Below, in pieces: positions 58,291 through 61,600 of a stretch of 64,000 nucleotides of DNA (within the stretch, counting starts at the first letter, position 1; each line of letters opens with the position of its first letter). Where the stretch lies: the NCBI GenBank assembly GCA_053919585.1, contig CM132814.1; one strand, 5' to 3'. Below the pieces are notes generated by a model. The model had not been told where the DNA came from. It worked only from the letters and a program-made list of their open reading frames with translations, and searched no databases. Origin of the DNA: Euprymna scolopes (taxonomy: Eukaryota). Position numbers and translations under genes: made by a program.

Positions 58291-58644
58291 TGTAGAAAAA
58301 AAAATGGAGGCTACTTACGGATGGGTGTCGCTGTCCATCGGGGAGGAATGAACCAGCATGAGCAGATCTGTCTCACCGCCTAAATAGACTAAGGGAGTGG
58401 TGGGAGGCTTGTTTCTATTGGTTATAAAAGGCAACCTACAACCATTCACATTCTTCTTCTTCTTCTTCTTCTTCTTCTTCTTCTTCTCTTGTCACTTCGC
58501 TGAGTCAGTTTACGCGAGCGAGGCTAGAGTTTTGATTCCTTTTTCTTTTGATCTGTTACTTGTCCCCATTGGTTAGGGGCGCAGAGAGCATTCTTTGCAA
58601 CCCCTGACGACAGTGACCTACCGGATCCCGGACTTTTTCCAACA
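58291..58644 (+). repeat. 5' LTR
   Basis: TGT...ACA, TATAAAAG at 58423, (CTT)n tract. Confidence 0.95.
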
Positions 58645-58655
58645 TCTTGCAAAGA

Positions 58656-61600
58656 ATGTCCAATAACCCTTTCCTCCCCATTGACCCAATGGATGCCACT
58701 AGGGATAAGATATTATCAGAAAAGGAAAATTTGTCACACAGGATTCTGCGTCGCATATCTGCCTGTTCTGGACGCATAGGCTCTCTGGCATACTCCACCT
58801 TTAGGGGGCAAATTCTGGCTGATGTCGAGGAGTTGGAGGTATGCGTGGGTCAGTTGGACCGCCTGGATGGAAGGGCCCCTGATGAGAGCGAGGACGATTG
58901 GTTGAGGCAGAACGTGGAATACCTTAATGCCGTGGAGGACCTAGACAATTTCCGCAAGTCATCTCTGCCTGGTCCCAGTGATGGATCTGTTCCCCAGTTG
59001 TTTGGAGTGTCTTCTGCGTCGGGTAGGACTGCCGCCTCCTTCGTTGTCAAGCCTCCTCAGCTCCAAATCACGGGGCCCACCTTCAGTGGGCAGGAGGTGG
59101 CAGCTGATCCCCTAACCTTTTGGAATTTTCTTACTCGTTTTGAGAACTGTGTATTTGATATGGCCAGCGATGCAGACAGACTCAACTTTCTGAAATGTTG
59201 TCTCTCTGACGAGGCCCTACGGCTTGTCAAACATTTCAGCTGCACTAACTCGAATTATACTCGAGCCTTATCTATTCTTAAGCGTGAATATTTGGATCTC
59301 GACAGTACCGTGGACCATATCTTTGAGGACATTCTGAACTTCTCACCAAAAAGGAATGCTCCCCTCTCGGAATTGGGGGATTTTATCTCCAGGACAGCTT
59401 CCATGCTTGAGGAATTGGGAAACTTTTTTTCTTGCGATTTTTCGGTGGACACTTCTAGCGGGGCTAGGCTCATGAGAAAATACTCTTCAGAAAGTTCCCT
59501 GATGACCTGAAGGGGGAATTGATGGCACTCACAGATAGAAGAGTACCGCCTCTATCAGCTCTGTTTGGGCTCACTGGTGAAGCTATTAAGCGGATGCAAA
59601 TCAAGGGGCGTTCTAGTTCATCGCTGCCACCACCAAATGTTACAGGCCGCTGTGCGACACGGAAACCCAATCAATGGACTTCTGCTACTTCATCATTTGG
59701 GGCGGACGTTATAGGCGCTGACTCAGCCGGTTACTCTCGCTCCCTTCAACCCCTCTTGCCTGTTACCTTCTCGTACGGAGCGAGTGAAGTTTCTGTGAAT
59801 TGCCTTTTGGATACAGGCAGTGGGCGGACATATCTGTCTTCTCGTATACTGGGATATCTGTGTCCGGATGAGCCCGTTGGAGCCCAGTGTCAACTTAAGC
59901 TGTCTACCTTTCTTGGGGAGTGTCTACAATAATTTAGGGAGGTAGTATTGGAGACCGACTTGGGCGCAGGAGACACGGTGAGGTGTCCGGTTTTGGTGTC
60001 TGGCACTCTCGATTTATCGATTCGGTTGCGGAATGTATCATCGATGTTGCGCACTTTCAGAAACATGGGCTGCTCACTGGCCGGCCAGTTCGAGGAGGCA
60101 ACCGATTTAATAACAATCGAGGGTGTGATTGGCCTGGACCTGATTCAGCACCTAGACCCCTTTAAACTGGTTCCGTGTTTGAGGGGTTGGGCCTTCTCGG
60201 TCCCGTCTGGATTAATCCCGTTCGGAGATCTCGACTCCTTCATTTCGGATAATATACCCTCTCGTGATACGACTCATCTGTCCTTTAATACTATAATGGA
60301 GCATACTCCGCAGGTCGAGGCCTCCCATCTGTGTTTTGTGTTGGAGGCTCGACCTACCTACTTTGACCCCTTTGAGGATTGCTTTCCTGACAGTGCTGTC
60401 CAAAGAGGACTGGAACAGATAGTGAGCCTGGAGTCCTTGGGAATACCTGACCAAGAGGCGTTCTCTGAATATGATCAGGAATTAATACAACGGTTTGAGG
60501 AGACTGTGGAACTACGCGATGGTAAATACTATGTGGAGCTCCCCTGGCATCAGGATAGATTAGAAAAGGTGCCCTCCAACCACGCAGCATCATTGCGCAT
60601 CCTGGACCGAGTAGCCTCGAACTTAACAAAGAAAAACCGATATGCCGAATATTTGGAGGTATTCAGGCAACAGCAGAGAGAGGGTATCATTGAGGAAATT
60701 TTTCTCCCCTCAGGAGTTTGATCAATACATTTGGATACCGCATATACCTGTTTTTAAAACGGATCCAACGACGACAACTAAAATTAGACCAATTTTCAAC
60801 TGCAGTTTGAAGACTGGAGGCGGACTGTCCCTAAACGAAGCGGCTTATTCGGGTGTCAACCTCACTGGGGACATTTTAAACTTGCTATTGGCCTTTAGAA
60901 CAAACCATTACATTCTGTTAGCAGACATCCGTCGTGCATTTCTGATGATTCATCTTAAATCGGGGGCTGACAAGAACCGGTTTTGCTTCTTTCTGAGGGA
61001 AGGAAGTGTCCTGCGTTGTTTCCGGTATACCACCCTTATTTTTGGTTTTACCTCCAGCCCGTTTATATTGGGATGTATCTTGAAGTTGCACGCGGCCAAA
61101 TACCCACTGGATGCCTGCCGCCAGATGATGGCGGAAAAGTTTTATGTGGACAATCTTGTCGCTTCTGTGGCTGACCGGAATGATCTGTTTTCATTGTACT
61201 CCCTTGTTCAGGAACGCTTACAGGAGGTTTCATCATTCAGTCTTGCAATACCAATTGCGAGACCCTCCGTGCCAGAATGGAGAAGGACAGCACATTGAGC
61301 ACCCATGGAGAGCAGTGGAAGAAGGTCCTCGGGTATCGCTACTCCCCGCTTACCGAAGAATTGTTCGTACCCCATACTAAATGTGATGCCAACGCATCAA
61401 GCAACAGGAGCATCCTTTCGGAAACAGCTAAGGTGTTTGACCCACTGTCTCTCTATTTGGCTGTCACTATCAGGAGTCGTATACTTATCAGAGCTATGTG
61501 GAAAGATGGTATGGGCTGGGACGATATCGCCTCTCCTGCCATCCAGAGTGTCTGGAGAGAACTTGCCGGGGAACTTTCAAGGTTGGGTGACCTAAACTTC

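Follow-up and report, generated by a model that had tools for sequence, protein, structure and literature searches.

A decayed LTR retrotransposon of the BEL/Pao superfamily in the genome of the cephalopod Euprymna scolopes (GCA_053919585.1, contig CM132814.1) and at least five related families have no docking site for a host tRNA; the primer-binding site (PBS) instead matches a stretch of the element's own LTR, so that these elements probably start copying themselves with their own RNA. The element lies on the + strand at 58291-63689 of a 64,000-nucleotide stretch of DNA (hereafter the window). The sequence CATTCTTTGCAA (58589-58600, hereafter the arm), which is present in both LTRs, is the exact reverse complement of TTGCAAAGAATG (58647-58658), which starts 2 nt after the terminal ACA of the 5′ LTR, where a PBS belongs. 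An earlier note, made from the sequence alone, had described this pairing, the absence of TGG after the LTR and the overlap of the pairing with the first in-frame ATG, and all of these observations are confirmed. The note's interpretation was partly supported: of the three readings that it offered, self-priming is supported by covariation, whereas priming by a half-tRNA and a conserved translation or packaging switch at the ATG are not.

Structure of the element

The 5′ LTR (58291-58644, 354 nt) and the 3′ LTR (63341-63689) both run TGT...ACA, are about 97% identical, and are flanked by a 4-bp target-site duplication, TATT (58287-58290 and 63690-63693). Each LTR contains a (TTC)n microsatellite, at 58451-58488 in the 5′ LTR, the length of which differs between the two. 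The second copy of the arm is at 63634-63645, and a polypurine tract GGGAGTG (63334-63340) abuts the 3′ LTR. Pfam searches of the ORF fragments identified DUF1759 (gag; PF03564, 2.9e-08), Peptidase_A17 (the Pao-type aspartic peptidase; PF05380, 1.8e-12), a weak match to RVT_1, and Integrase_H2C2, which together with the TG...CA LTRs, the short duplication and the polypurine tract assign the element to BEL/Pao. The gag-pol remnant (58656-63345) is 96% identical to an intact copy of the same family (family A) recovered from a public run (L070, with a 1766-aa ORF), but has 8 small indels, is split into at least six ORF pieces, and lacks about 680 nt at the 3′ end of pol (junction near 63265), including the end of the integrase region and the PHD finger. 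It is a dead copy, so its cis elements have to be judged from relatives.

The two arms of the 12-nt inverted repeat are separated by 46 nt. The 12-mer occurs three times in the window, on the + strand in both LTRs and on the - strand at the PBS, whereas shuffled sequences give an expectation of 0.05 and none of 100 shuffles reached three matches. The LTR is followed by a 2-nt spacer, TC (58645-58646), and then by the PBS. The first in-frame ATG (58656-58658) lies inside the duplex and is the one from which the 1766-aa ORF of L070 is called; it adds 11 residues, and it is the second ATG (58689-58691) that aligns with the start codon of the related family B.

Conservation of the pairing among copies and related families

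Whether other copies carry a normal TGG-type PBS that was deleted in this one had been named as a condition that would overturn the interpretation, and the 5.9-Gb host assembly (46 large scaffolds, with a mitochondrial unit of about 20 kb) was searched accordingly. Thirteen copies of family A reach from the 5′ LTR into the leader; all of them keep ACA-TC-TTGCAAAGAATG except one old copy with two substitutions, and none has a tRNA-type PBS. About 30 LTRs keep the arm. These copies are too alike to show covariation.

The conservation of the pairing in relatives, which had likewise been set in advance as a test, was examined by searching with the C-terminal part of pol, which revealed a second family in the same genome, family B, at 70% amino-acid identity, with dozens of near-identical copies, many of them with intact ORFs of 1776-1798 aa (Peptidase_A17 PF05380 at 2.3e-32, Integrase_H2C2 plus DUF5641, and a PHD finger at the C-terminus). 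The 350-nt LTR of family B carries ATCCTTTGCAA, and its end (...CCACA) is followed by TC and TTGCAAAGGAT; the T-to-C change in the arm is matched by an A-to-G change in the PBS. The LTR-end/PBS junction of family B occurs at least 186 times in the genome, indicating that a family with this layout has been highly active. A pattern search for a family resembling family C (below) in the same genome gave 12 hits, all of which are chance matches or decayed copies of family B.

Protein searches gave more distant relatives from marine and other metagenomes, and the contigs that could be resolved have the same design with different sequences; families C to F, from marine metagenomes, have 46-75% RT identity. 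Family C (locus L069) has the arm TTCTTTTTTAGCAA, a spacer TT and the PBS TTGCTAAAAAAGAA, pairing over 14-15 bp; family D (L083) has TTGTTTCGCAA, TT and TTGCGAAACAA, pairing over 11 bp; family E (L086) has TTTTTGTCGCAA, TT and TTGCGACAAAAA, pairing over 12 bp; and family F (L095, in which a true LTR pair is present) has AAAAATTCCTCGAAA, a spacer of 8 nt and TTTCGAGGAATTTTT, pairing over 15 bp. Family G (L097) has a 14-nt stretch in the LTR, a spacer TT and a 14-nt stretch at the PBS that pair over 8 bp, one mismatch and then 5 bp. The LTR ends of C, D, E and G are inferred from collapsed assemblies rather than from flanking DNA. With 12 bp in A and 11 bp in B, the six families A to F have about 75 pairs, all Watson-Crick, with no G:U pair and no mismatch. 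The duplex begins exactly 2 nt after the CA of the LTR in six of the seven families (A, B, C, D, E and G). The polypurine motif of family A is also seen in C, D and F. A metagenome scan with a gag alignment added one distant locus (L087) with no recognisable LTR end; this locus and L084, L085 and L098 did not yield a resolved layout, their LTR ends being unknown, and L096 has a significant 15-nt inverted repeat but unclear LTR ends.

When each PBS, anchored at its first base, was compared with the LTR of every family, it was complementary to its own LTR over 11-15 nt and to those of the other families over only 4-8 nt; shuffled LTRs reached the observed length in 0 of 2000 trials for A, B, C, D and F, and in 1 of 2000 for E. 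RNAalifold on an independent MAFFT alignment of A to D returned the arm-PBS helix as the only consensus structure, in which four of the 11 pairs are changed on both sides, none is changed on one side only, and none is broken. In a count of pairs, 100% of 44 cells are paired, compared with 41-57% when the partners are slid by 1-3 columns, and 1 of 500 shuffles reached the observed covariation score. In folds of single sequences the helix is part of the minimum-free-energy structure, as its dominant helix, in A and B (z about -3.2) and in C and D (z about -2.7).

Position of the arm relative to the predicted transcription start

The earlier note cautioned that the paired segment is well downstream of the start predicted from a TATA box, unlike in Tf1, and this caution holds. 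A TATAAAA box (58423-58429) lies 166 nt upstream of the arm, with an initiator-like CACATTC about 27 nt downstream of it; its function is inferred. TATAAA is conserved in families A to D and G, at 137-192 nt upstream of the arm in A to D, with an initiator-like motif about 30 nt downstream (CCAGTTC in B), and at 340 nt upstream of the arm in G. This suggests that the arm is internal to the RNA, rather than its first 11 nt as in Tf1. On the other hand, a conserved GGCA sits immediately 5′ of every arm and is preceded by a small GC hairpin (58564-58579; CCCC/GGGG here, CGACCC/GGGTCG in B and D, with one A-T to C-G compensatory exchange), which was read by eye and has modest support; this would also fit a start at the arm, because U3 is transcribed at the 3′ end of the RNA in any case. 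Neither the transcription start nor the poly(A) site was mapped, as two poly(A) RNA runs with raw reads gave 0 reads and a single-cell run gave 31 mostly antisense reads, in which the only loose end (58682) is a template-switch-oligo strand-invasion artefact at AATGGG. The sequence evidence leaves both positions of the start possible, with an upstream start considered somewhat the more likely. One collapsed RNA contig spans the polypurine tract, LTR, PBS and gag.

If the arm is internal, a cut in cis leaves only 44-330 nt of template before the break, which works only if the poly(A) site lies downstream of the arm, between it and the LTR end. No AAUAAA is seen there, although a U-rich tract precedes the LTR end. 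Otherwise, priming must act in trans on the partner RNA.

A proposed model of self-primed reverse transcription

The window copy belongs to a lineage that is proposed to have replaced the tRNA-binding site with a site complementary to an internal stretch of its own LTR, and the most likely mechanism, favoured with moderate confidence, is self-primed minus-strand synthesis of the Tf1 kind. In this model, the arm anneals to the PBS, the RNA is cut at the 3′ end of the arm (A58600, after ...GCAA), reverse transcriptase extends the resulting 3′-OH across the 2-nt spacer into U5, and each replication cycle re-copies the PBS from the primer, which would keep the two sides perfectly complementary. 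Three features point to the arm being the primer rather than only a structural partner. The helix occupies the position of the PBS, and its 2-nt offset from the LTR end, although not shared by family F, is the geometry needed if the 3′ end of the primer defines the end of the linear cDNA that integrase trims. The pairing is all Watson-Crick in A to F and tracks substitutions and run-length changes on both sides, as expected if plus-strand strong-stop synthesis re-copies the PBS from the primer in every cycle, a step that occurs in retroviruses and Tf1 and is inferred here. Finally, no alternative primer was found in the host. What the analysis demonstrates is the pairing, its conservation and covariation, its position relative to the CA of the LTR, the absence of any tRNA match, and the proliferation of a sister family with this layout, which therefore supports active retrotransposition; the cleavage, the priming itself, and whether priming acts on the same RNA or on the partner RNA are inferred, and there is no direct evidence of cleavage or priming; RNase H cleavage and the junction of strong-stop DNA with element RNA were not assayed. 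Because the arm probably lies more than 100 nt inside the transcript, the details would differ from Tf1.

A more far-reaching possibility, which is tentative, is that a whole marine-invertebrate lineage of BEL/Pao elements is independent of tRNA and primes from an LTR segment more than 100 nt inside the genomic RNA, or from the copy in the 3′ R region. That would require an internal cut, priming in trans on the partner RNA, or cyclisation of the genome; it would be mechanically distinct from Tf1 self-priming and evolved independently of it, and in the closest families it is coupled to an integrase with a PHD finger.

Alternative explanations

The arm-PBS helix might instead be a structural or regulatory RNA element (for example, for PBS occlusion, packaging or dimerisation, genome cyclisation, or translation control), with reverse transcription primed by an unidentified RNA other than the arm. 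This is considered unlikely but has some support: the arm is probably internal to the transcript, the duplex covers the first ATG in family A, retroviruses and Ty1 have U5-PBS and cyclisation helices, and hairpins abut the PBS in C and D as U5-IR does. In contrast, the PBS sequences differ between families A and B, which share one host, so no single host RNA can fit them; the pairs without G:U or mismatch look like template copying rather than selection for structure; the helix is anchored 2 nt after CA in six families; and no tRNA-type PBS was seen by eye elsewhere in the leaders of A or B. The ATG overlap, which the earlier note suggested might act as a translation or packaging switch, is specific to family A and not supported as a conserved feature, since in B, C and D the gag ATG lies about 35 to 175 nt downstream of the duplex.

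Priming by a half-tRNA, as in copia and Ty5, was proposed in the earlier note because the complement of the PBS contains a sequence like an anticodon loop, and a search of the host nuclear and mitochondrial tRNAs had been suggested to test it. The complement, GGACATTCTTTGCAAGA, can be drawn as an anticodon arm of tRNA-Ala(UGC), CATTC/TTTGCAA/GAATG, with a 5-bp stem and a 7-nt loop, cut within the anticodon stem, in which case the primer attached to element cDNA would be a host RNA ending in CATTCTTTGCAAGA. The full hairpin has one exact hit in 5.9 Gb, which is not a tRNA, and twenty near-hits are not tRNAs either. The exact 14-mer has 82 hits, of which twelve are family-A PBSs and the rest are scattered single hits. 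The 12-mer with a T-loop downstream has 7 hits, compared with 3 in the control; none is a tRNA by ARAGORN or Rfam, and four belong to a dispersed repeat. The 19 nuclear tRNA-Ala(UGC) genes that were found have the arm G(T/C)TCGC-TTTGCAT-GCGA(A/G) and share only the 7-nt loop with the PBS complement, and the mitochondrial genome has no match with up to 3 mismatches. The sequence of family B does not form the stem, and families C to F have unrelated PBS sequences, each matching its own LTR. This reading is therefore rejected as very improbable. Least likely of all is a chance inverted repeat or a PBS damaged by deletion in a dead copy: although the window copy is degenerate, this is refuted by the shuffles, by the same layout in the family-A copies, including the intact L070, and in the family-B junctions, and by covariation in five further families.

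Comparison with known retroelements

Self-primed reverse transcription is documented only for Tf1-like chromoviruses (self-priming elements are listed in PMC6934838; the mechanism, described by Levin and by Lin and Levin, is cited in PMC5443660). As in Tf1, there is no tRNA PBS, the PBS is a perfect complement (11-15 nt) of the element's own RNA upstream in the LTR, and the two sides covary between families. In contrast to the Ty3/gypsy chromoviruses, which have an integrase chromodomain, the domain set here is that of BEL/Pao (Peptidase_A17, DUF1759 and DUF5641), in animals, and the integrase ends in a PHD finger. The element thus resembles Tf1 in its predicted mode of priming but is not a member of that group.

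The profile of Belpaoviridae (Semotivirus: Tas, Pao, BEL, Achilles) by the ICTV states an 18-nt PBS for tRNA-Arg or tRNA-Gly and replication primed by a host tRNA (PMC8742986), and Achilles uses tRNA-Tyr (PMC4580426). The element shares with these the gag-pol domain set, TG...CA LTRs, a 4-bp target-site duplication and a polypurine tract next to the 3′ LTR, but has no TGG-type PBS in the family-A copies examined, in family B, or in C to G; as BEL/Pao elements are described as tRNA-primed, this is a derived state. No report of self-priming in BEL/Pao was found in the literature searched, which is not proof that none exists. A BEL/Pao lineage with a covarying self-complementary PBS would be a second, independent origin of tRNA-independent priming, and would explain why PBS finders based on tRNA fail on many BEL/Pao elements of marine invertebrates; the internal position of the arm raises the questions of where the RNA is cut and how the first strand transfer is achieved.

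Elements of the copia/Ty5 type, which are primed by an internal part of initiator tRNA-Met, likewise have a PBS that does not start with TGG, and the family-A sequence superficially resembles an anticodon arm, but no host tRNA matches and the PBS tracks the LTR of each family. Retroviral U5-IR and U5-leader stems and the HIV-1 U5:AUG helix are similarly long-range helices between U5/R and the region around the PBS and the gag start, but they coexist with a tRNA PBS and tolerate G:U pairs, whereas here the helix occupies the position of the PBS itself, is all Watson-Crick, and does not cover the ATG in B, C or D. The fungal GalEa-like Copia elements with a Conserved Hairpin Site and the PBS-less bivalve TRIMs are LTR elements that also lack a recognisable tRNA PBS and carry conserved inverted repeats (PMC6934838), but there both arms lie in the internal domain, 12-41 nt apart, with a regular mismatch, whereas here one arm lies in the LTR and the other sits exactly at the position of the PBS.

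Polyprotein C-terminus and family B

The polyprotein of families A-D ends in a PHD finger (PF00628, 5.5e-11), located after the integrase and DUF5641; in a family-B copy on contig C3 of the host genome (L068) it lies at 5526-5660, and it is also present in P0001, P0002 and P0003. More distant BEL/Pao elements among the hits lack the PHD finger, and the copy in the window has lost this part. The PHD finger may be a chromatin-reading tether analogous to the chromodomain of chromoviruses such as Tf1.

Family B is a young, high-copy BEL/Pao family, with at least 186 junctions between the LTR end and the PBS in the host genome and dozens of near-identical copies with uninterrupted orfs of 1776-1798 aa, for example at C3:30059190-30065357 (L068). 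One family-B copy (L061, C42:64433300-64435800) has its 5′ LTR truncated about 170 nt in, by sequence that encodes a LINE-like reverse transcriptase orf (366 aa). A more distant BEL/Pao contig from the TARA metagenome (L096) has a 15-nt exact inverted repeat upstream of gag, its arms 1 kb apart at 1340-1354 and 2336-2350; it may be the same design with a long LTR, although its LTR ends were not resolved.

Other sequence features

Single-cell oligo-dT reads over the LTR and leader of the element (window positions 58631-58699) are mostly antisense to it. The apparent RNA start at 58682 coincides with AATGGG and carries the template-switch oligo, and is therefore a strand-invasion artefact. Within the LTR, just downstream of the TATA box, is a (TTC)n microsatellite (58451-58488 in the 5′ LTR and 63500-63531 in the 3′ LTR), which is 6 nt shorter in the 3′ LTR, and a poly-G run near 58350 and 63390 also differs between the two LTRs. 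Upstream of the element, at 55599-56700, a repeat search reported 33 overlapping "copies" of 185 nt with 60-65% identity and irregular spacing, which are a low-complexity or short-period repeat tract.

Four loci of the host genome (L089, L090, L091 and L093, on contigs C15, C18, C21 and C38, respectively) belong to a dispersed repeat that contains TTCTTTGCAAGACTTTTATAT...GGGTTCRA followed by a GTTAACATGTAAC...GTTACA palindrome; no identity could be assigned to this repeat, which is not a tRNA according to either ARAGORN or Rfam. The mitochondrial genome is present in the assembly as a concatemer with a period of 19,994 bp (25% GC) on contigs C355 (44.6 kb) and C901, with COX1 found twice on C355 and once on C901.
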